From Podarcis vaucheri (taxonomy: Eukaryota): a DNA stretch of 64,000 nt. Where the stretch lies: NCBI GenBank assembly GCA_965113315.1, contig OZ220372.1. One strand, written 5' to 3'. The translations under genes and the position numbers were made by a program. The notes beneath the pieces are model-generated. The model had not been told where the DNA came from, did no database searches, and was given only the letters and a program-made list of their open reading frames with translations. Within the stretch, counting starts at the first letter, position 1, and the number at the start of each line of letters is the position of its first letter. Positions 1-16,594 of this stretch are shown here, in pieces.

Positions 1-234
1 CAGCACAGCCATCTTCTCAGAAAAACTCTTCACAAGCTCAAGAGGTCAAGACACAAAAGCTTTAGCAACTAATCTACACTTAATGACCCACCCAGTGGTA
101 TTCAGAATATCACTCATGAAATCACTCAAGATATCCCTCAAGTAATTAAGGAACAAAAGAAGAAAAGGCACACTAATCTAGGAACTTCCTCTCTGCCCAG
201 AACGTTGGAGGCTATACACCACACCCCTCAACAG

Positions 235-242
235 TATTTATA
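235..242. promoter_or_regulatory. TATA-like element in the pLTR, ~60 nt upstream of the hammerhead (also at 587-594 and 2226-2233)
   Basis: TATTTATA on the element sense strand, TATAAATA on the antisense strand. The position fits a pLTR promoter; function is inferred. Confidence 0.35.
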
Positions 243-297
243 GGAACTCAAACACCAGACTCTGCTCTGTTCCAGTAACAAGAAGCCGAAAGCACCA

Positions 298-335
298 GCC
301 TGAAGATGACGAGTGAGACCTCGTCGAAACGTCGC
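298..335 (+). ncRNA. Minimal hammerhead ribozyme-like motif in the pLTR (copy A)
   Basis: CTGAAGA (300-306), extra T, stem II GACGAG/CTCGTC with 6-nt loop, GAAAC-GTC (326-333). Stem I is only ~2 bp (GC/GC). Confidence 0.75.
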
Positions 336-493
336 CCAGACACCCCGACTCTTACACGGGAAGACACCCGAAGACACCAAAACCTGCATATATATATATA
401 TATATATATATGCTTTCGTAGATTTTCACGGGTACAGGAATGCAGGTTTTGGTGTCTTCGGGTGTCTTCCCGTGTAAGAGTCGGGGTGTCTGT

Positions 494-531
494 GCGACGT
501 TTCGACGAGGTCTCACTCGTCATCTTCAGGC
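494..531 (-). ncRNA. Hammerhead-like motif (copy B)
   Basis: Reverse complement of the motif at 298-335. Confidence 0.75.
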
Positions 532-763
532 TGGTGCTTTCGGCTTCTTGTTACTGGAACAGAGCAGAGTCTGGTGTTTGAGTTCCTATAAATACTGTTG
601 AGGGGTGTGGTGTATAGCCTCCAACGTTCTGGGCAGAGAGGAAGTTCCTAGATTAGTGTGCCTTTTCTTCTTTTGTTCCTTAATTACTTGAGGGATATCT
701 TGGGTGATTTCATGAGTGATATTCTGAATACCACTGGGTGGGTCATTAAGTGTAGATTAGTTG

Positions 764-1394
764 CTAAAGCTTTCGTGTCTTGACCTCTTGAGCTTGTGAA
801 GAGTTTTTCTGAGAAGATGGCTGTGCTGCATTTAGTTGTGCTCTGGCTTGGCTTCGTGTATAGGGGCGAGCTGTGGTTTTGTGCCTTGTGCCAGCCAGAT
901 CTGTGTAGGGATTGCAGGGGGGTGCAGCATCCGGAGGTGCCACTATAGTTTGGCTACTGGATGGAGTCTGTAATATGTCTGTGGAGAGGGTCTGGGTTTG
1001 GGTCTGGTGTGGTTGATTGGTGACGGCGTTCTGTGTGCCTCTGGTTCTGGTGTCGGTTTTTGTGGGGAGGGCTAATTTCCAGATGTCTGGCAGGCGGGAC
1101 GTGTCGTCACGCTTGTTCATGTTGTGAGGGTGTTTCTCTATCTCGATGGCTTCCATGATTATTCTCTTGTGGTGATGTTCCATGTTAAAGAGCAATTTGG
1201 AATCTGCAAAATTAATTTCGTGTCCTGTTTCTTTCATGTGTTGGAAAAGAGAGGAAGTTTTTTCTTCTTTTTTGACGGCATTCTTGTGTTCTGCGATACG
1301 TGCATTTATTCGTCTGTTTGTTTGTCCAATGTACGTGGCTGGGCAGACTTTGCAGGGTATTTCATAGACCCCTTGGTTTTCCAGCTGGATTTTG
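764..1394 (-). CDS. Mirror copy of the PLE GIY-YIG ORF fragment
   Basis: C-terminal part of track ORF 764..1696; reverse complement of 1426-2056. Confidence 0.88.
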
Positions 1395-1414
1395 GTTTTC
1401 CAGCTGGATTTTGA

Positions 1415-2056
1415 AACCCAAAAGACAAAATCCAGCTGGAAAACCAAGGGGTCTATGAAATACCCTGCAAAGTCTGCCCAGCCACGTACATTGGACAAAC
1501 AAACAGACGAATAAATGCACGTATCGCAGAACACAAGAATGCCGTCAAAAAAGAAGAAAAAACTTCCTCTCTTTTCCAACACATGAAAGAAACAGGACAC
1601 GAAATTAATTTTGCAGATTCCAAATTGCTCTTTAACATGGAACATCACCACAAGAGAATAATCATGGAAGCCATCGAGATAGAGAAACACCCTCACAACA
1701 TGAACAAGCGTGACGACACGTCCCGCCTGCCAGACATCTGGAAATTAGCCCTCCCCACAAAAACCGACACCAGAACCAGAGGCACACAGAACGCCGTCAC
1801 CAATCAACCACACCAGACCCAAACCCAGACCCTCTCCACAGACATATTACAGACTCCATCCAGTAGCCAAACTATAGTGGCACCTCCGGATGCTGCACCC
1901 CCCTGCAATCCCTACACAGATCTGGCTGGCACAAGGCACAAAACCACAGCTCGCCCCTATACACGAAGCCAAGCCAGAGCACAACTAAATGCAGCACAGC
2001 CATCTTCTCAGAAAAACTCTTCACAAGCTCAAGAGGTCAAGACACGAAAGCTTTAG
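1415..2056 (+). CDS. C-terminal part of the PLE ORF: GIY-YIG endonuclease plus low-complexity tail (5'-truncated, no RT domain)
   Basis: Open frame NPKDKIQLENQGVYEIPCKVCPATYIGQTNRRINARIAEH...HMKETGH...RIIMEAIEI...NMNKRDD. It has the GVY/YIG motifs with intervening CxxC and the conserved R, H, E and N of the PLE GIY-YIG. Confidence 0.9.
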   Translation, partial: NPKDKIQLENQGVYEIPCKVCPATYIGQTNRRINARIAEHKNAVKKEEKTSSLFQHMKETGHEINFADSKLLFNMEHHHKRIIMEAIEIEKHPHNMNKRDDTSRLPDIWKLALPTKTDTRTRGTQNAVTNQPHQTQTQTLSTDILQTPSSSQTIVAPPDAAPPCNPYTDLAGTRHKTTARPYTRSQARAQLNAAQPSSQKNSSQAQEVKTRKL

Positions 2057-2288
2057 CAACTAATCTACACTTAATGACCCACCCAGTGGTATTCAGAATA
2101 TCACTCATGAAATCACCCAAGATATCCCTCAAGTAATTAAGGAACAAAAGAAGAAAAGGCACACTAATCTAGGAACTTCCTCTCTGCCCAGAACGTTGGA
2201 GGCTATACACCACACCCCTCAACAGTATTTATAGGAACTCAAACACCAGACTCTGCTCTGTTCCAGTAACAAGAAGCCGAAAGCACCA

Positions 2289-2326
2289 GCCTGAAGATGA
2301 CGAGTGAGACCTCGTCGAAACGTCGC
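2289..2326 (+). ncRNA. Hammerhead-like motif (copy C)
   Basis: gcctgaagatgacgagtgagacctcgtcgaaacgtcgc. Confidence 0.75.
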
Positions 2327-2486
2327 ACAGACACCCCGACTCTTACACGGGAAGACACCCGAAGACACCAAAACCTGCATATATATATATATATATATAT
2401 ATATGCTTTCGTAGATTTTCACGGGTACAGGAATGCAGGTTTTGGTGTCTTCGGGTGTCTTCCCGTGTAAGAGTCGGGGTGTCTGT

Positions 2487-2524
2487 GCGACGTTTCGACG
2501 AGGTCTCACTCGTCATCTTCAGGC
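2487..2524 (-). ncRNA. Hammerhead-like motif (copy D)
   Basis: Reverse complement of the same 38-mer. Confidence 0.75.
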
Positions 2525-2550
2525 TGGTGCTTTAGAAGCCGAAAGCACCA

Positions 2551-2588
2551 GCCTGAAGATGACGAGTGAGACCTCGTCGAAACGTCGC
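2551..2588 (+). ncRNA. Hammerhead-like motif (copy E)
   Basis: Same 38-mer. Confidence 0.75.
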
Positions 2589-3608
2589 ACAGACACCCCG
2601 ACTCTTACACGGGAAGACACCCGAAGACACCAAAACCTGCATTCCTGTACCCGTGAAAATCTACGAAAGCATATATATATATATATATATGCCATATTGA
2701 AAATTCAACAGTATTTTAGTGTAAATTTCTCCTAAACTATAAGTTACTGTATACAGTTTTGCCTAAGGTAATTTATTTATATGTAACTTTCACAAATATA
2801 TCAATTTTTGTGCAAATTACTTAGCTAAATAACTGTATCGTACTGCAAAATTTGGTGAAGGGGGAATTCCAAAGGATAGCTGTGTTTTGGTTCACATATT
2901 GTTCTGGAAAGAGCGAATCAGGTAGGTTTGCTTTTAAATGCAAACTTAATTGACTTTTCCCCCTCATCCCTAACTGGGGCTCCTGTTTTCTCCCCACTAT
3001 TGTAGGTCAGCTGTAGTGTTCTGCACCAAGTGCGATGTAGCCTTGGGTCGAAAAAGTTTCCCTTCCGCTGCAGTAGAAGATAGCTGTATATCAGGTGTTT
3101 GGCCCTCCAAATGTTGCTGAACTAGAGCTCCCATCAGTTGCAGCAAGCATGGCCAGTGGCTAGGGAGAATGGGAGTTGTAGTTCCCAAACACCTGCTCTA
3201 TGTGCAACATGACTAGAAGATAGAGTTTTCAGTACTATAATGAAGTTCAAAGTTCTGTCATACATGAATCTACTCCAGGTCCGTCCGTCCCCCCCCCCCC
3301 AAAAAAACCCAACTGTCTTACTTTCAGGAGCCCAATTTGAATGGAAAAAGGGGTTGGAGTTGGAAAACCTTGCCAATCTGCTGAGAAGCACGCAGAAATT
3401 GACTGGTAGATCTCAATCTCTCTTCTGTCCACCCCTGTTCCATTGCTACTGGCATCCACTCTGCAAGGTCTCTAGCAGAGACCTTTTTTATCAGCCTATT
3501 AATCAGAGATTAACTAGATCTGCTGGGATTGAGCCTGGAACCTTGTGCACGCAAAATGTGTGCTTTACCATAATCCAGGGAGAGAAACCAGGGACATGAT
3601 GCAATATT

Positions 3609-3837
3609 AAAGGTAAAGGGACCCCTGACCATTAGGTCCAGTCGTGGCCAACTCTGGGGTTGTGGCACTCATCTCGCTTTATTGGCCGAGGGAGCTTCCG
3701 GGTCATGTGGCCAGCATGACTAAGCCGCTTCTGGCGAACCAGAGCAGCGCACAGAAATGCCGTTTACCTTCCCGCCAGAGCGGCACCTATTTATCTACTT
3801 GCACTTTGATGTGCTTTCAAACTGCTAGGTTGGCAGG
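3609..3837 (-). mobile_element. Sauria SINE (partial, internally deleted)
   Basis: aaaggtaaagggacccctgaccattaggtccagtcg... is the reverse complement of the SINE 3' end seen at 58140-58180. Confidence 0.85.
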
Positions 3838-4073
3838 ATTACACACACCTTACTTCCTGAGAATCACCTCCAGTGCAAGGATTAAAGAAAACTGATATTG
3901 CAAGAACGAGATCCCTTCTGGCCCCAACCCACCCTCCCAACCAGCCAGCCTCCAGAATTGTTTAGCCTTCTTGACCTCTCTATCCAAGGTGTTCAGCAGG
4001 AGTTAACATCGTCCTCTGAAAACAATCTGATGCTATGTACTCTTTAAGCCATGTGCCACTACCACATGCACCT

Positions 4074-4117
4074 TAGAACTGTAGAGTTGGGAGGGATCCT
4101 TGGGGATCATCTAGTCC
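4074..4117 (-). mobile_element. CR1 LINE extreme 3' end
   Basis: tagaactgtagagttgggagggatcc...atcatctagtcca matches the CR1 tail at ~17055-17097. Confidence 0.6.
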
Positions 4118-5574
4118 ATGTAGAGACTGAGGATCCTTTGCTATAATTATTGGTCAACCACATTCCAGGCCCAGGTCACAAGGCAAAGTTTGCACTCTTT
4201 CCCCACTTTTGTTGTTTCCTGGTTTCGCTTTTACAGCCCATATGGGATTAGCTCTATGTTCCTGATGTGCTTGGGCTATCATTTCAGGAAGAATCCTATT
4301 CAAAGAACTGATAGCTGACTGGGTAGTCTAAGGGCATCAGCTGTCTACTCTGCCTACTATTCCTCATTGAATCAAAAGTTTTAAACAGCGGCCCTCTCTG
4401 TGTCTACAGAAAATGTTTTGTTAAGTTAGATTTGGACAAGCATCTCACTCCTAGACATGTGCATATGCTGCAAATACTCTCAGGTTGCTTCCAGATGGCC
4501 TGTTCTCGATGAATGTTCATCCTGATCCGCTTGCAAAGTTTGAGGGAAAGTGATATATGTCTCCTATTTATTAAGCATTCATTCTGATTTGTTTGTGGGG
4601 ATGTTATATTATTATTGTTATTATTTTTTATTATTTTTATTATTTTTATTATTATTATATACCATCCTATACCCGCATTTATACTTTCCAGTGCATTTCC
4701 CCATCACTTTCTGTATGGCAAAAGTTCATTAAAAAAAAAAGTGCTGAACCTCCTTCAATGCCAGTAAATTTTAGCTGTGCGATTAGAACCCCATAGCAAA
4801 AACAGTGACAGTTGGGAAGCAACATCAGTAGCTTGCCCAGATGCTGTTAAACTGTCATCTTAGGCTGTGTAAGTCCATTCCAAATTACAAAAGATGTGAA
4901 AGCTTGCATTGACATGGAATGCTTTACGGTGGCTGCAATGCCTTTTGACTGGAGTGCATGCTTTTTTGCAATGCCTTTTGACTGCAGTGTAAATTATCCC
5001 ATATCCCACAGTCCCTCCACCTAACTTGGCACAGTGCAACTCTTAGTCTACAGCAGTGTGATGATGATGGAGGCTATTGCCAACACAGCTGCAGAGTTCT
5101 GTGTTAATAGGACATCACCGCTTGCAATGCCATTGCAGTTTCATAGCTCTTGATTATGTGCCTGTGCAGTGCCCTATCCTACACTAGGCTGTTTAAATTG
5201 GCTGTGGAAACCCTGGCAAGAGATCTTGCTTCATAATGTGAGCTCAGTGTACTTTGGCAGTGAAAAAAGTGGTGGAAAAGAAAAGCAAATTGATAGAGGG
5301 TAAGTCTATGAATGGCCAAGATCGGGCATCTGGCAAGACCTGCTTTTCAGCAAGTGGGTGAGGGATAGCAAAAGGCAGGTTGAGGTTGGTAGAAAGCATC
5401 CCGTTTGTCCTCATGGACGAGCCTCTAGTGCTGGTTGGCTACTGTGGGAAACAGGATGCTGGACTGGAATATGGAACTTTTGTTGTTGAACTGCAAGTCC
5501 CATCCACCCCAGTAGGTATGGCCAATCTCTCTGCATTCCTGTGTTGCATCCCTGTATTAGACTGCTCTGGCAGT

Positions 5575-5755
5575 TACAGATAGGTAGCCGTGTTGGTCTG
5601 CCATAGTCAAAATAAAAAAATTCCTTCCAGTAGCACCTTAAAGACCAACTAAGTTAGTTCTTGGTATGAGCTTTCGTGTGCATGCACACGAAAGCTCATA
5701 CCAAGAACTAACTTAGTTGGTCTTTAAGGTGCTACTGGAAGGAATTTTTTTATTT
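5575..5755. mobile_element. Fold-back pLTR fragment of a second Penelope-like family
   Basis: Perfect palindrome 5608-5757 (centre 5682/5683), 33-nt unpaired left tail, 12-bp TSD tgctctggcagt (5563-5574, 5756-5767). Contains the hammerhead 3' half cacacGAAAGCTC. Confidence 0.8.
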
Positions 5756-6409
5756 TGCTCTGGCAGTGCTCATCTTCTGTTCCCCAGCTTGCAGCATGGC
5801 TAATCTCAATACATTCAATACTCAATACATGTATTAGGTCATTCTACCTAATGTTTAACTTCAGCATGCCACGTCTACCTAAATTGTTTCTCGGCCAATC
5901 CTCAGAAAGCATGACAAATCTTTGGCCATTCTCTTCTTTCCTCAATCTTTTGAAAGTATTTGTAGACCCTTGAGGTATTGTACTCTATCCTCCTTAATCT
6001 TTTTGTCCCTTTGGGCTAAGCATACGCAGGTTCCTTCAGTTGTAACAGACTTAAAAACAAGATTTAAAATATATATACTTAGTGGAAGCACACAAACAAA
6101 TTCAAACATTTGGTGATCATGCAAACAAGCTGTCTTATCTCATGGATAGCCCCTTTGCTGTTACCCTGACAGCTGTGACTCAGCAGTGTCGGCCATTTTG
6201 GGGGTGAGTGAGACATAGGTTGTTGAGGTCCCCATCCCTAATGAAAATAGTCTCCAACCACTGTCAAATCACAAGTCACATCTGTCTCCATTGACTGATC
6301 CATAAAAATCACAGACCTGCTGCTTTGCAACACTCATCACAGCTTAAAATCATGGATCCAATGTACGGTCCTCATGAATCCTCATATTTTTGTACAAGGC
6401 ATCACCACA

Positions 6410-10534: not shown

Positions 10535-10598
<64 letters not shown>
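10535..10598. repeat. Compound microsatellite (TG)n(TA)n
   Basis: Directly visible. Confidence 0.95.
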
Positions 10599-10599
<1 letters not shown>

Positions 10600-10681
10600 G
10601 CTTTCGTAGATTTTCACGGGTACAGGAATGTAGGTTTTGGTGTCTTCGGGTGTCTTCCCGTGTAAGAGTCGGGGTGTCTGG

Positions 10682-10719
10682 GCGACGTTTCGACGAGGTC
10701 TCACTCGTCATCTTCAGGC
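10682..10719 (-). ncRNA. Hammerhead-like motif (second locus, left arm)
   Basis: Reverse complement of the same 38-mer. Confidence 0.75.
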
Positions 10720-10785
10720 TGGTGCTTTCGGCTTCTTGTTACTGGAACAGAGCTCTGTTCCAGTAACAAGAAGCCGAAAGCACCA

Positions 10786-10823
10786 GCCTGAAGATGACGA
10801 GTGAGACCTCGTCGAAACGTCGC
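10786..10823 (+). ncRNA. Hammerhead-like motif (second locus, right arm)
   Basis: Same 38-mer. Confidence 0.75.
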
Positions 10824-10870
10824 CCAGACACCCCGACTCTTACACGGGAAGACACCCGAAGACACCAAAA

Positions 10871-10916
<46 letters not shown>

Positions 10917-10919
<3 letters not shown>

Positions 10920-11099
10920 TTTCGTAGATTTTCACGGGTACAGGAATGCAGGTTTTGGTGTCTTCGGGTGTCTTCCCGTGTAAGAGTCGGGGTGTCTGTG
11001 CGACGTTTCGACGAGGTCTCAGAGACCTCGTCGAAACGTCGAAACGTCGCACAGACACCCCGACTCTTACACGGGAAGACACCCGAAGACACCAAAACC

Positions 11100-11103
<4 letters not shown>
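10917..11103. mobile_element. Mini fold-back PLE pLTR unit 2
   Basis: Centre at 11021 (gtctc-a-gagac), 8-bp duplication gaaacgtc in the right arm, followed by (TA)n 11104-11148. Confidence 0.9.
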
Positions 11104-11151
<48 letters not shown>

Positions 11152-12934
11152 GGGAATTCCCTCTCCAAACTCTTCTTGCTTTATGGAAATGTTTCACAGT
11201 ACATGTGCCAGAATGCAGATGCCCAAGCTAGGTTTTGAAAAGCAGATTACTATTGTCAGAGAGACAATAAAATGAACGGATCAGCTCGTCAACTGCCCAG
11301 TGTATTGCCTCATTGCTTCCATGTGCTACTCTTTTGGTATTCATGTTGGCTCTTATGTGTACGTCCTTGAGGCATAGATTGAAGTTATTTGTCTAGAGTC
11401 CAGCACTGTATGCCTTATACTGGTGGATTTCTAGATATAGCCACATTATGTCTCTGATAATTTACCAGAAAGCAAGTGCTGCTAATTCAATAGTACACTT
11501 TCCTGCAGGTGTTCTTAGGACAGCATTCTTCTTGTCACACACATGGGGAAGGGAACAGATACTTCCCAGTCAGCACAAGAGGATAGACTGATCAGTGTCC
11601 CCTAATCAAAGATATGTGTATTTGTTTGTGTATGTGTATTGGAATTCCAGTTCCATCTTCAGGCAACATATCTGAACTACAGAACTGGAACCAGTGCAAT
11701 TTGGCTGGAGCAATTTGCAAGTATTGGTGCAACTGCGGTTCCATGCAATTTGGCTGGTGCTTCTTCTTTAAATTTGGCAATCCCTGCTTCAGGCAGTGTC
11801 ATGTTTCTTTCCCCAGCAAAGGGGAATGTTAAGTCCTAGGGTATTGTGGGCAAAATCCTCTTGGGACACTTTTGATGAGTGTTTGTGGCACCAGCATCAT
11901 GTGAGATCAATAATGCTTGTTGGAGCGACGAGAAAACAAATACAATTCCTATCCACCATCTAGGTAAGTTGAAGTACTTGGATGAAAACTGATACAGTGC
12001 CACAGGAGTCACTGCCAGGAATTCAAGCTGCAAAACACATGAATGTCCATAGAAAAGAATGCTAGTGTCAAAATTCACACTCACAATACAGTGGGGAACA
12101 CATGGGCAGGAGTGCAAGGAAACATCTGCTTCTACTACAGTGGAGCCCACACATGGTAATAGATGTGCTCTGCTTATATTTTACAAGCTTGCTTAAAGAT
12201 AGTCATTGATACCAGACAAAAAATCAGTGGCAAGTGAGATCTGAACAGAAATGCACAGCATTCAAACTGATGCCACTGACAATCTTATCCATAAGTGAGG
12301 TACGGCTTATTAAACTCAGGGTACTTATTTCTGATTGAGGCTGCAAGAGTTAGCTGGCATAGCACAACTTAGTCATTTAACTTTGCTTAATGGAGACCAC
12401 ACAAGGGGAGAGTACTCTTGTACTCAGATTCTGCTTGCGGGTTTCCCATAGGCAATGGGTTTCCCAGTGGTTGGCCACTGTGAGAACAGGACACGGGACT
12501 GAATGGGCCATTGGCCTGATCCCACAGGCTCTTCTTATGTTTATGTTCTTAATATTAGGTTGACAGTTAGGCACTGAAATTCCTGCTCCATTATCATTGT
12601 AGTTCCTCATTTGTAGGCAGGTAGGCAAAGATATTCTTCCACCTAAAATATTTGTATTAGAATCCCAGCTTCAAAATGGGCAATTCCTTTGCTAGGGACA
12701 CTGCTTGACTGCGTTAAACACTAGGGATACTGGAGTGCTTGTGTTTATCCTCAATTACTGCTGTAATGAGTAGCTAACGTATTTATTCTGTGTATGTTTA
12801 AGCTTTGATTGAATTGCTACAGACATTTCATTGCCATTTGACACCATTGCATACAATCCTATCCACCGCCCACACATCTCTATGTCAACTTATAGGTAAT
12901 ATCCACAAAAGCTTATGCCACAATAAATTCGTAC

Positions 12935-13330
12935 ATCTTTGATTAGCATCTGTTTGTCTCTGGAGACAATGAAAGAGTGCGCCTTCAGGGGTAAAGTCAA
13001 ACCATTGGAGAGTTACAGCACCTGCTGTGGCTGTAGAAACAGATATGAGAAAGACATAGTTTGTTGCAGCTGGGGCAGATGAAGACATCCAGTTGTGTTG
13101 ATGCAGCTGTACCATGGCGTTCCTTCTTTCTGCGCTCCTTTATGGTGCCACAAAAGCATTGTCACCATCTGCTAGAGCCCCATTCTTCCATTCCCATCTC
13201 ATCCCATCCCAGATCATGGATTCCCGGTTCCTGAAACTGTTGAAGCCTCCCAAGTCAGTTTTTAAGAGCCTGCATATCTGCTCCTGTGACGTGAATAATG
13301 TTGGACTGCAGACGCCTGCTTTTCCAAAGG
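12935..13330 (-). mobile_element. RTE-clade LINE 3' end (degenerate)
   Basis: Minus strand encodes DVFICPSCNKLCLSHICFYSHSRCC, resembling the C-terminal Cys/His motif of RTE ORFs, followed by a short 3' UTR. Confidence 0.65.
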
Positions 13331-13899
13331 AGTTGAAGGCACTGCAAAGCTCTACAGCAGTGTGTGTGCATGCATGGGCAGTGAAAGAGCAGTTCATCTG
13401 CCTTTTGCTCCTCTGAAGCAGCTGAGTCTACAACAGGGAGGAACAAGGGGTGAAAGGCACTGAGTGTCAACTTTTAGCATGTGTCTGCATCAAGGGACTC
13501 ATATGGGGGGCGGTGGTGGTGGTGGTGAGATGTGTCCTGGTGATGGATTGGATGGTATGTTAGTGGAAGGGACAAGTGGTGGGGTCAGGTGGTAGTGAGG
13601 AACTCAGTGGTGTTGAGAGTGTGCTAGTTTAATCGGTTGGGGAGGAAAGAATGTCAAGTATATGTGAGAACAGGAGCAAGCTCCAAGCTAGGGGGAATCT
13701 TGGAGAGTCAGGAATGAGGCAGCAGGAAGAGGGGTTGTTCCACGGAAGGAGAGGATGAAAGAGGAGATTAGTAGGGAAGACTGGGGAGAGCGAAGGGGTC
13801 AGGGCTTTAATGAAAAGGAAGGTCTATGAAGTTCCTCACGGGACAGCAGTGTCGCCACGCCAGCAAGAAGGGTGGCAATCTAAAGTGGCGAGGAGGGGT

Positions 13900-15200
13900 G
13901 ACTCTCGGGCTGCCTTTGGAAGAGACAGGATGACAGCGAGGGCTATATACACGGTGTGTGTCGCGAGGGGGGGGTTGAGGGGGGTTGCCCCGGGGTGGTG
14001 GCCATCGTCGGCGCTGCTGCCGCGCGGGGCGGGTAGGAGGGGGGGTGCTTGGGAGGGAGGGAGAGGCGGGCGCGGGGCGTGGGGGGAGGCGGGGCGGAGG
14101 TTGCTGCCTGAGCCCCCGGGATCGGTTCGGCTCGCCTTGCTCCGACCCTTTGCACTACAGTCGGCGCCGTCTTGCTGCTGCTGCTGTCGCCGCGGTAGTC
14201 AAAACTCCTACCGGCCTAAAAGTTGTCTGGTGCAAAATCCCTTCTGCAGCAGCAGCCCGAAAGAAAGCGAGAGCGCCAGCCAGCCAGCCGCCCGCCGCGG
14301 GCAGGAGGGAGGGAGGGAGCGTCGGCGACGGTGGATGCCTATTGCCCCTGTTGCTGCTGCAGCCGGCCAGCCAGCCAGAAGCGCGCGAGCGGAGAGGGGC
14401 GCATCCAGCCCGTTGGAGAGGAGCGCGGGGGCGCGTCCCCGGTGGCTTCCGAGCTGACCTTGCCTGGCCCGGCGCCTTCCGCGCTACCAAAGGGCGACTC
14501 ACCTGCTGCCTGCGCTGCGCCGGGACTAACTCGAGCGGGGCGAGGAGAACACACACTCGCACACACACACCGAGAGGCAAACTTGCCGCAGCCGTCGACG
14601 TCGCGGGGTTGGAAAGCGCGGAGATGCAGGTAGGGGGCGCCCCTCGCAGGGCCAGCGCCGGAGGGCCCGGACAGGCGCTCTTGTCACCGCCGGGGCGCTG
14701 GGGGGGGGGGGGAGAGAGAAGGAAGGAGCCCCGTCCGAAGAGCCCCGGAGCCTGGCCTCCCTAACTGGGAGTTGTGGGGAGAGAAGTGTGCGCGCCTTGC
14801 TATTTTTCGCCGAAACAAAGCTCCCTCTCCCTCAGAACCCGCCTTCACGCGTTCTTGCCCCTACGGAGACGCAAACACGTGTCCCGGCTCCCCTGGGCCC
14901 CGACCGGGGTGAAGCGCCTCGCCGCCGCGGCCGGACAAGGAGCCGGTTTCGCGCTGGTTGTGGCTTTTGGCGCGCTGGCCGGGGGTCCCATTGGACTCGG
15001 CGGGACTTCACTCCTGCGGAGACGCCTTAAAAAGCTCGTCCTGGTTGGTGTCTCGGCCCGGGCCGGAATTTAGCCCTGCTTCAAGCGGAGGAGGAGAGTT
15101 CACCCTTTTTTGAGTAGCGGGGAAAGAGCGTCTTGGCGAGCGGGCACAGCGCGCTTCTGTTGCCGAGATCCGCTCGCCACACTGGTGGGACTTGCTCGAA
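13900..15200. promoter_or_regulatory. CpG island / promoter of an unidentified gene
   Basis: Very GC- and CpG-rich against a CpG-poor background. Clustered GC boxes (gggcgg) at ~14025-14100. Confidence 0.9.
14155..14629 (+). other. Candidate first exon (largely 5' UTR) ending ...GAGATGCAG|GTAGGG; start approximate
   Basis: Lies downstream of GC boxes, has a (GCT)n leader, donor at 14629/14630 followed by G-runs typical of an intron start. Confidence 0.45.
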
Positions 15201-16594
15201 CAAGGGTGGGTAACCTGTGCCCCTCCAGATGTTGTTGGGCTCCAACGCCCATCGGCCCCAGCCAGCGTAGCCAATGATCAGGAATGATTATTGGCAGCTG
15301 GAGTCCAACATCCTTATGGAGGGTGACAGAATCCCCACCTACTAAACTAGGGGGAAGTTTTTGCAAGAGGGAGGATGCATCTGCCTGACAGTCTGGCAGG
15401 TTTGAGCTCCAGCAACATCTATTCTTTTAAGGCAGCACTTTCCCTTGAGAGTAGCTCCACCGAACTCAGGGGGGTTTACAGTGCTATCTTAACCCTGTCT
15501 ACTCCTGGGGTGAAGAGGATTGCAGTCTCAAGTCTGTAGGAAAGTTACACAGGAGCAGTCTCCAAATCCTGCTTTTGTTGACCTGTTTCAGGGATTGCTG
15601 GTGGATGGGGAGGACTGGGGAAGCTTCCAAGCAAGAAAACAAATCGGATTGCAATGTTGAGAGTGAGGAAAATATCCTTTCTCTTCACTCACAGCCTTTG
15701 GACTATTCATCCACCAAAGGAAAACCAACTTTCTTGTACCTTGTTTTACAGCCTCCAGCTGTCTTTTGCCCTGGTATATTTACTGGTCTTGGGTGCTTTG
15801 CCATCCTGTCAGGTAGAGAATAGCTGAGTGAGCTCTTGGACTATTCTGCTGCTGCTGGGGCATCCCTTCAGCCTGTCTGGTGGAGCCCCAGACTCCAGGG
15901 TGAACAGTTTGCCCTGCACAGCCGCATCCCAATGCAGGGCACTTTGGGTGGTCGCTGAGCACTTTACAGTACTTTTAACGAGGTGGAGACTGAGTGCCTC
16001 ATGGGTAGATAGGAGCTGCTCACAACCTCGGGAGGGCAGCTGCTGTTTTCTTCAGAACCTGTAAGGGATGCTTGTGGCACTGATCCCCTCAAGACGCTGT
16101 GGAAGGAAGGTGCTTTTAAGTCTCTCTTTAAATTACTCTTCTCTCATCACCTGTACTTTATGGCCTGTCATTGGCAAGATAACCTTGGAAAGTGAGGCTC
16201 TCAATTTGTTTGTAATGAAATCTCAGAGGCGGAGTTCAGCTCTTAAAGCCTTTGGCAACTTGGTGTCTTCTAGATGTTTTGGACTGCAAAGAGGCAGATG
16301 AGAGTCATGGTCCAAAGCAGCTGCTGAACCAGCTGCTGGATGCATTTGATGAGAGATTATGCTTGTCTTTGTGCCCTGTTTGTGGGTGTATGAGAGGCAT
16401 CTGTGTGGACTAGATGAGCCTTTGCTCAGATCTTGCCAAGCAATTTACTGTTTTCTTTAAATGTATGGTGTTCACACACTGGAAGTCAAACTGAGCCAGA
16501 GGAGACAGTGACCCCCTGGCATGTCTGGGTTAAAAGGCTCTTGGGTGACATAACTGAGAGAGTTCTCTGTGTGAGGCCTTGGAGAACTCCTGCC

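Follow-up and report, generated by a model that had tools for sequence, protein, structure and literature searches.

A stacked array of head-to-head Penelope-like element copies bounded by (TA)n tracts in Podarcis vaucheri

Penelope-like elements (PLEs) are known to insert as head-to-head inverted, 5'-truncated copies, with a tail of 30-40 nt at one end, into simple AT-rich or (TA)n targets (PMC8557442, PMC3846280). In Drosophila virilis Penelope and Adineta vaga Pen2a_Av (Arkhipova et al. 2013, PMC3846280), an inverted pseudo-LTR (pLTR) or an inverted 5'-truncated copy is found in head-to-head arrangement, palindromes occur at the inverted junction, and just one of the inverted ends bears a tail, of 31-34 nt; the pLTR extends over the first codons of the ORF, and simple AT-rich targets are preferred. 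A strong (TA)n bias, complex tandem and inverted insertions, and a tail have also been described for the Naiad and Neptune PLEs (Craig et al. 2021, PMC8557442). Poseidon_Ac (PAc), a PLE of Anolis carolinensis with a Repbase consensus in File S1 (Frangieh et al. 2024, PMC11167929), has been studied in vitro: reverse transcription starts at two adjacent internal sites, of which one lies 111-118 nt inside the ORF, and the interval that they enclose is the tail. PAc, which favours AT-rich DNA, cuts both strands of its target and extends them both (PMC11167929).

We analysed a 64,000-nt stretch of DNA (the window), the first 2,690 nt of which show all of these likenesses to Penelope and Pen2a_Av. 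Insertions of those two elements, however, usually retain a copy that is full or longer, with direct pLTRs and a single short inverted pLTR, and show target duplications of 8-10 bp, whereas both arms are equally truncated here, giving a near-perfect palindrome, and no duplication is readable in the (TA)n. With PAc, the family described here shares a single ORF that ends in a GIY-YIG endonuclease and is followed by a pseudo-LTR, copy ends at two internal sites ~30 nt apart and ~85-115 nt into the ORF, and AT-rich targets. The hammerhead core of PAc (CUGAnGA / AUG...GAAACGUC), which is experimentally active, has the start codon inside it, a layout that appears to recur in our element, and the cutting and extension of both strands by PAc would fit the mirror-pair insertions of this locus. 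The two are nevertheless different sequence families: in a by-eye comparison the ORF starts (MTSETSSKRR... here, MPAIDVGETS... in PAc) and the endonucleases differ and only motifs are common, and we found no motifs of this element in the PAc supplement. Insertions here are confined to (TA)n, and at both starts a homology of 2-3 nt (GCAU with a TA primer) is possible, whereas PAc is reported to start at a site without homology to the cut DNA (PMC11167929). In Naiads the endonuclease is N-terminal and a canonical hammerhead is missing, unlike in this element, where a putative hammerhead-like core is present. Neptunes have a CX2-5CxxC linker before the GIY-YIG domain; relatives of our element lack this linker upstream of GVYEIPC (...LPYIKGTTDKISKILHKHNIKTAFCTNQKIANILRNPKDKIQLENQGVYEIPC), and the window copies begin just downstream. 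MuTAnT, a Mutator-like family of Medicago (PMC4486113), is likewise a mobile family specialised on TA microsatellites, but it is a DNA transposon, with neither retrotransposition nor fold-back arms. A 2026 retrozyme preprint treats neither inverted units nor TA targets. Thus the structure, which we confirm to be real, is of an ordinary and already published PLE type, and the locus offers a clean, young natural example of it in a family distinct from that of the in vitro work.

Arrangement of the arms

Sequence inspection and a repeat search divide positions 1-2690 into five arms of alternating orientation, A+ B- C+ D- E+ (Table 1), just as the original prediction had it. They resolve into the end of one unit and two complete head-to-head palindromes, and the unit boundaries first proposed (to 388, 411-2379 and 2404-2671) are correct to within 1-2 nt, an ambiguity due to TA microhomology. 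Every outward-facing arm end adjoins a perfect (TA)10-13 tract, in agreement with the earlier description of palindromic units bounded by (TA)n. The window begins inside A+, and the left end of the array lies outside it. Positions within arms are numbered from the element ORF's start, on a reference of 996-997 nt in which C+ (1413-2380) is joined to the E+ tail; this reference supplies coordinates only and is not a consensus.

Table 1. Arms, element parts and (TA)n tracts in the 64-kb window
Feature	Position	Strand	Description
Arm A+	1-388	+	right arm, remainder of unit 0 left of window start; -304 to +83/84 (ATG at 306); no tail
Perfect (TA)12	388-411		between unit 0 and unit 1
Arm B-	412-1394	-	inverted 5'-truncated copy, +112/113 down to -870
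B- tail	~412-439	-	28-30 nt
B- hammerhead-like core	496-529	-	
B- ORF start	523	-	ATG
B- endonuclease ORF part	764-1394	-	UTR between core and ORF part
Unit 1 centre	1395-1412		18-nt slipped duplicate of 1377-1394
Arm C+	1413-2380	+	-883 to +83/84; no tail
PLE ORF, C-terminal part	1415-2056	+	213 codons and stop; GIY-YIG endonuclease
Pseudo-LTR untranslated part	2057-2296	+	240 nt, stop codon to next ORF start
Hammerhead-like core	2291-2324	+	CUGAAGA / UGACGAG-loop-CUCGUC / GAAACGUC
Perfect (TA)13	2379-2404		between unit 1 and unit 2
Arm D-	2405-2534	-	+112/113 down to about -16/-19; tail
Arm E+	2535-2671	+	about -23/-26 to +112/113
Perfect (TA)10	2671-2690		right edge of array; unique flank from 2691
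Unit of a different PLE family	5574-5757		non-TA site; clean 11-nt target duplication
Second array	10535-11148		same family; two units
Left edge of second array			(TG)n(TA)12, ahead of F-
Arm F-	10599-10752	-	tail
Arm G+	10753-10872	+	ends at +79-81; no tail
(TA)22			between G+ and H-
Arm H-	10917-11021	-	tail
Arm I+	11022-11103	+	ends at +83/84; no tail
(TA)23			right of I+, then flank

The largest unit, for which inverted arms of 955 bp had been predicted, is formed by B- and C+. An automated repeat search placed its arms at 440-1399 and 1421-2380 with 100% identity; by eye, perfect complementarity ends at 1394/1426, and the two arms are 100% complementary, with 0 mismatches, over ~955 nt. 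The junctions at the centre of this unit have the microhomology ttttg in common. We set the start of C+ at 1413 by reference to other copies, whose natural upstream sequence departs at that position, and loose ends occur at 1413 in read sets X15 and X2. At the centre of unit 2 there is no filler, and E+ reaches 7-8 nt beyond D-. What had been called an inverted 5' pLTR is indeed an inverted copy, but actually a full inverted 5'-truncated one that reaches into the endonuclease ORF.

With the second array, the window contains four complete head-to-head units of this family. Close inverted repeats of at least 40 nt are limited, across the 64 kb, to the units of 1-2690, the second array (at 10575-11148) and the unit of the other family (at 5608-5757), and chance therefore cannot produce the palindromic units. 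Arm ends fall into two classes: B-, D-, E+, F- and H- end at +112/113, and A+, C+ and I+ end at +83/84, with G+ at +79-81. The 28-30 nt by which they differ, present on the first five arms and missing from the other four, is the published PLE "tail". E+ is the sole (+) arm that has it (~2643-2671). Copies that end near ORF positions +84 and +112 are thus found outside the PAc family, and for this reason the rule of two start sites and a tail seems to extend across families. In all four asymmetric units of the window, which belong to two PLE families, the tail is on the left; on an unlikely reading, this could reflect coupling to the direction of replication or transcription. Asymmetry at the centre is informative in one unit only, B-/C+.

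The element and its hammerhead-like core

The predicted GIY-YIG ORF is present in C+ and mirrored in B-. The endonuclease has CCHH-type cysteines (GVYEIPCKVC...YIGQT), and GVYEIPCKVCPATYIGQT is present. Its match to the Pfam GIY-YIG family (PF01541; E 2e-4, 22.0 bits) is just below the cut-off of 22.6 bits, which the relative P0003 clears with 25 bits, and the core residues are invariant across the alignment of relatives. In these relatives (47-94% identity, with P0001 at 94%), a reverse transcriptase YVDD region, the motif LPYIKGTTDKI and GIY-YIG lie in a single ORF. Alignment A1 shows 65-85% identity for two of them, P0002 and P0015, whose single ORF has the YVDD region upstream of the endonuclease, and the match of P0015 to RVT_1 (E 2e-6, 28 bits) is under the cut-off of 29.6. 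Together with the cysteine-bearing endonuclease, this single-ORF organisation bears out the original assignment of the copies to the PLEs. Every copy in the window is 5'-truncated at or after the endonuclease and is missing the reverse transcriptase; therefore, none is autonomous.

In C+ the stop codon (2054-2056) is followed by the 240-nt untranslated part of the pseudo-LTR and then, from an ATG at 2297, by 84-112 nt of ORF (MTSETSSKRR...). The hammerhead-like core has the pattern CUGAAGA / 6-7-bp stem II / GAAACGUC, with a helix I of only 2 bp in cis, and the AUG of the ORF starts at A9 of the core. Seven identical copies of this core are found in the window, at 300-333, 496-529(-), 2291-2324, 2489-2522(-), 2553-2586, 10684-10717(-) and 10788-10821. 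Rfam searches of 1-6000 at E <= 1 and of 2255-2375 at E <= 10 gave no hammerhead match.

Origin of the palindromic units

We consider it very probable that the array was built by one young PLE family of the Penelope/Poseidon type, which retrotransposed serially and independently into a (TA)n microsatellite. Independent events are the best reading of the variants: arms within a unit carry common variants, and units differ. F- and G+ have +31c, and probably +81a, in common, and H- and I+ have neither; A+ differs from C+ by three substitutions, at -250, -179 and +31 (its +31c being common to F-/G+); and C+ lacks the tail of E+. The serial insertion originally proposed is thus upheld by units that are unlike in end type and variants but alike in their two arms. 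Recent activity, which had been read from the near-identity of the copies, stands to the extent that the family is young, with 0-0.8% difference between units; the 0 differences between arms within a unit do not by themselves demonstrate activity, because those arms have a joint origin.

We infer the following order of biochemical steps. An AT-rich target would be cut by the GIY-YIG endonuclease of the element, and reverse transcription would begin at either of two internal RNA sites, ~84 or ~112 nt into the ORF that lies after the pseudo-LTR in a tandem transcript; which of these two sites is used would decide whether an arm carries the 28-30-nt tail. Early abort of cDNA synthesis would cause the 5' truncation. 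Completion as a head-to-head mirror pair could then follow one of two routes: either each of the two target strands primes a cDNA, and one of these products switches to the end of its partner, or the growing cDNA turns back and serves as its own template, and the endonuclease then resolves one end. The (TA)n left on both sides would allow later copies to enter the same tract and to stack. LINE-1 twin priming also involves priming of cDNA by both target strands, and yields an inverted 5' part; there, different parts of one copy are inverted and no palindrome results, whereas here the arms cover the same segment. A more specific version of the first route, which we regard as unlikely, sees in the one-sided tail a relic of mirror-pair formation by a dimeric element protein acting on one RNA with both target strands priming, one at ~+84 and the other at ~+112. 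The trailing enzyme would displace the leading cDNA and then jump onto its 3' end, which would account for arms that stop 0-13 nt apart, for a tail on one arm, and for the greater length of the tail-less arm in B-/C+.

The (TA)n on both flanks of the units masks any target-site duplication. Of the seven (TA)>=6 tracts in the window, six lie next to PLE arms, in keeping with insertion into (TA)n. This association also raises an alternative that we think unlikely, although a little less so than the dimer, namely that the element itself made or lengthened the (TA)n, either by cutting with a long stagger, which would duplicate TA at the target, or by copying repeatedly as synthesis initiates. The association of so many tracts with PLE arms would be expected, as would the long inner and right tracts of the second array, (TA)22 and (TA)23, and PLE reverse transcriptases are related to telomerase (PMC8557442). 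Yet the unit of the other family occupies a non-TA site, where it has an ordinary duplication of 11 nt, the second array opens with a compound (TG)n(TA)n, a form that native microsatellites commonly take, and the literature regards (TA)n as a target (PMC8557442). It is from this compound repeat, the one feature that points this way, that we infer the presence of the (TA)n before the element. The self-perpetuating array originally envisaged stands in so far as each unit retains (TA)10-23 on both sides, but there is no sign that insertion lengthens or creates the tract.

A sequencing or assembly artefact, whether fold-back chimeras of long reads or the misassembly of a high-copy repeat close to or at the end of a contig, is very unlikely. 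The window does start inside an arm, and tandem and inverted PLE structures are known to disturb assemblies (PMC8557442). In reads of four runs mapped to 1-4200, other copies of the family made up most of what matched the PLE part and, through high depth and multi-mapping, masked the junctions of 1-2690 itself; unit number and TA lengths could still be in error. Against this, the units end exactly at the two biological end points of the family and at (TA)n, their centres vary, with slippage and microhomology, the same design recurs in a second array 8 kb off and in a unit of another family with a clean 11-nt target duplication, and the architecture was already published. Furthermore, in contigs of X15, which is probably the sample that was assembled, we detected at least six other (-)>(+) fold-back joints at a depth of 57-145, compared with ~30 in single-copy flank; these joints belong to other copies of the family, and not to the centres of 1-2690. 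Two X15 contigs pass from the short end directly into (TA)n, and an X15 contig spans 2671 to 2899 without differences. Bins of zero depth at 2101-2520 probably reflect duplicate arms, with reads that fit two places, rather than absence. An apparent rule in the X15 joints, that the (+) arm is longer, is uninformative and flips with the strand read.

Least probable of all is a single insertion followed by local rearrangement, through unequal crossing-over or slippage between (TA)n tracts and deletions at the centres of palindromes: long palindromes and (TA)n are prone to recombination, B, C, D and E are identical wherever they overlap, and 1-540 and 1992-2533 form a 99-100% direct repeat, but this repeat is expected regardless because all units have the same ends, the tail on E+ and not on C+ means that D-/E+ is no deletion derivative of B-/C+, variants common within each unit separate F-/G+ from H-/I+, and A+ is unlike C+ at three sites even though B- equals C+. 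An origin of the direct repeat by tandem duplication was likewise rated low, given the tails and the unit-specific variants.

Bearing on PLE integration and annotation

Arm ends, centre offsets and tail side compiled genome-wide could separate self-priming from dual-strand priming in PLE integration. Kilobase-long perfect palindromes within (TA)n are likely to be fragile and liable to recombine, and they are possible sources of hairpin RNA. Such loci are best masked as PLE rather than called miRNA-like hairpins: dozens of Rfam miRNA-precursor matches, all below gathering scores, merely reflect the palindromes and are not RNA genes.

Structure and identity of the arrayed element

The original prediction of five arms in alternating orientation held on a reading of positions 1-3600 combined with a repeat search, as did the 955-bp inverted arms of the largest unit and their GIY-YIG ORF: arms B- and C+ (signs denote strand) are complementary without mismatch over about 955 nt. 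Arms D- and E+ are complementary over ~130 nt, with E+ 7-8 nt longer at the centre, without filler. A second array of the same family (10575-11148) comprises two mirror units, F-/G+ and H-/I+, and opens with a compound (TG)n(TA)n tract of native appearance. Beside the centre of H-/I+, gaaacgtc is doubled in I+ (11022-11044), an 8-nt slip analogous to the 18-nt slip in the first array.

Features of the two arrays and fold-back joints in reads; arm ends are counted from the ATG of the element's ORF, by alignment of the arms to one another
Feature	Position	Strand	Detail
Arm A+	1-388	+	ends at +83/84
(TA)12 tract	388-411
Arm B-	412-1394	-	ends at +112/113
18-nt slipped duplicate	1395-1412		copy of 1377-1394
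Arm C+	1413-2380	+	ends at +83/84
ORF end, GIY-YIG endonuclease	1415-2056	C+	last 213 codons; Pfam E 2e-4, marginally below cut-off
Untranslated stretch		C+	240 nt, 3' of endonuclease ORF
Hammerhead-like core	2291-2324	C+	CUGAAGA-UGACGAG-loop-CUCGUC-GAAACGUC
ATG inside core	2297	C+	opens new ORF (MTSETSSKRR...)
(TA)13 tract	2379-2404
Arm D-	2405-2534	-	ends at +112/113
Arm E+	2535-2671	+	ends at +112/113
(TA)10 tract	2671-2690
Unique sequence	from 2691
Arms F-, H-		-	end at +112/113
Arm G+		+	ends at +79-81
Arm I+		+	ends at +83/84
Fold-back joints, run X15	458>2610, 466>2606, 497>2309, 475>341, 555>269, 565>265	minus to plus

All arms derive from the 3' portion of a single retroelement. In a protein search, relatives included one at 94%, others at 68-84% in the agamid lizard Phrynocephalus forsythii, and Penelope-like element (PLE) fragments from the beetles Pyrocoelia pectoralis and Leptinotarsa decemlineata (P0008, P0010, P0015) at 63-65% over the endonuclease part. 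The last value is high for lizard versus insect, and horizontal transfer of this PLE lineage could be involved. Longer relatives in the alignment carry a reverse-transcriptase YVDD region, an LPYIKGTTDKI block and GIY-YIG in a single ORF, and a search of that alignment for a CX2-5CxxC linker found none. Judged from sequence, the element, already proposed to be Penelope-like, is a canonical endonuclease-bearing PLE of Penelope/Poseidon type. All copies in the window lack the reverse transcriptase and hence were dead on arrival. Candidate miRNA precursors at 1354-1466, 2496-2579, 345-484 and 5624-5741 (Rfam 50-67 bits on both strands, all below gathering scores) were rejected, since they score solely because they are perfect hairpins.

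Read evidence on inverted structures in the family

Tandem and inverted PLE structures are known to disturb assemblies (Craig et al. 2021, PMC8557442), and here the PLE part reaches a depth of 10^4-10^5, so that the centres of 1-2690 itself are not distinguishable. However, in contigs of sequencing run X15 at least six further fold-back joints of the family, all minus to plus, come from other copies with differing truncation points and have depths of 57-145, which is single-copy level or above; two X15 contigs pass from the short end directly into (TA)n. X15 is probably the assembled individual: flank depth is ~30 with zero differences, and one contig spans 2671 to 2899. Natural sequence upstream of 1413 occurs in contigs of X15 and of a second run, X2, which fixes the C+ start. 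Given this read evidence, the exact biological end points of the arms and the presence of the second array, we consider an artefact very improbable; this judgement covers the structure, with unit number and TA lengths as assembled. Close inverted repeats of at least 40 nt in the 64-kb window are confined to the units of 1-2690, the array at 10575-11148 and a unit of another family at 5608-5757, so chance origin of the mirror arms is no concern.

The same reads show an extremely high-copy repeat at 3501-3920, probably a SINE (contig depths to 10^6; raw-read depth ~500-1000 per strand in 4/4 runs).

Arm ends, target sites and probable serial insertion

Growth of the locus by serial insertion, as put forward in the original prediction, is supported: arms within a unit agree, whereas units differ from one another in variants and tail, the 28-30 nt by which +112/113 arms exceed +83/84 arms. 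Divergence between units is 0-0.8%; A+ differs from C+ at three positions, whereas B- equals C+, and +31c, probably also +81a, is common to F- and G+ and absent from H-/I+. The tail is present in E+ and absent from C+. D-/E+ therefore did not arise from B-/C+ by deletion. Since all units have identical ends, a direct repeat such as 1-540 = 1992-2533 is to be expected. Serial independent insertion into one tract therefore appears the best reading of both loci.

The window has seven (TA)≥6 tracts, of which six touch PLE arms. Both end sites read GCA then U, so that 2-3 nt of pairing with a TA primer is possible; G+ stops 2-4 nt earlier, at UA, and its partner F- carries the variant CCUACA. An unrelated second PLE-like family contributes a unit at 5563-5767, a perfect 75+75-nt palindrome (5608-5757) with zero spacer and a 34-nt extension on the left only. 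The unit lies at a non-TA site between two direct copies of the 11-nt sequence gctctggcagt (5563-5573 and 5757-5767), and its truncation falls inside a GAAAGCUC hammerhead-like half. The left arm bears the tail in all four asymmetric mirror units (412-439, 10599-10627, 10917-10945 and 5574-5607; two families, three loci), for which the chance expectation is 1 in 8; this might reflect a link with the direction of replication or of transcription.

Published parallels, mechanism and age

All structural points raised in the original prediction are already published. Inverted 5'-truncated copies adjoin PLE insertions, only one end of which bears a tail of 30-40 nt, and some clades show a (TA)n bias (PMC8557442). 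Arkhipova et al. 2013 (PMC3846280), who proposed self-priming, described inverted pseudo-LTRs placed head to head with palindromes where they join; one inverted end has a 31-nt tail, and simple AT-rich targets are preferred. For PAc, Poseidon of Anolis carolinensis, Frangieh et al. 2024 (PMC11167929) showed that reverse transcription begins at two adjacent internal RNA sites. One of these lies 111-118 nt inside the ORF, and the segment separating the two makes up the genomic tail. In the same study, the start codon lies within stem II of the hammerhead, and the protein prefers AT-rich DNA and, in contrast to R2 or L1, cleaves both strands of its target and extends both. The PAc Repbase consensus (File S1, PMC11167929) has the same layout, CUGAGG|AUG...GAAACGUC, but belongs to a different sequence family, so the match is in architecture. 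The prediction is supported, yet describes ordinary published PLE behaviour, in another family and a lizard-type genome.

What is observed is anatomy and end points, from which we infer that the endonuclease would cut (TA)n, cDNA would initiate at +84 or +112, and synthesis would abort. The mirror pair could then form (a) if both strands prime and one cDNA jumps to the other's 3' end, or (b) if one cDNA folds back and copies itself, the endonuclease trimming one tail. By itself, (b) should leave a tail on each arm, the pattern seen in D-/E+. One-sided tails follow from (a), which would still have to account for both arms stopping within 0-13 nt of each other. The only informative unit is B-/C+, whose tail-less arm is longer by 13 nt.

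At a rough substitution rate of 1e-9 per site per year, zero differences between B- and C+ place an upper bound near 1.6 Myr on their age, although gene conversion between arms could hide the true age. Elsewhere in the window, 12001-16000 is GC-rich (54% versus 39-46% in all other 4-kb bins), with several overlapping ORFs at 13810-14764, and may be a CpG island or exon.
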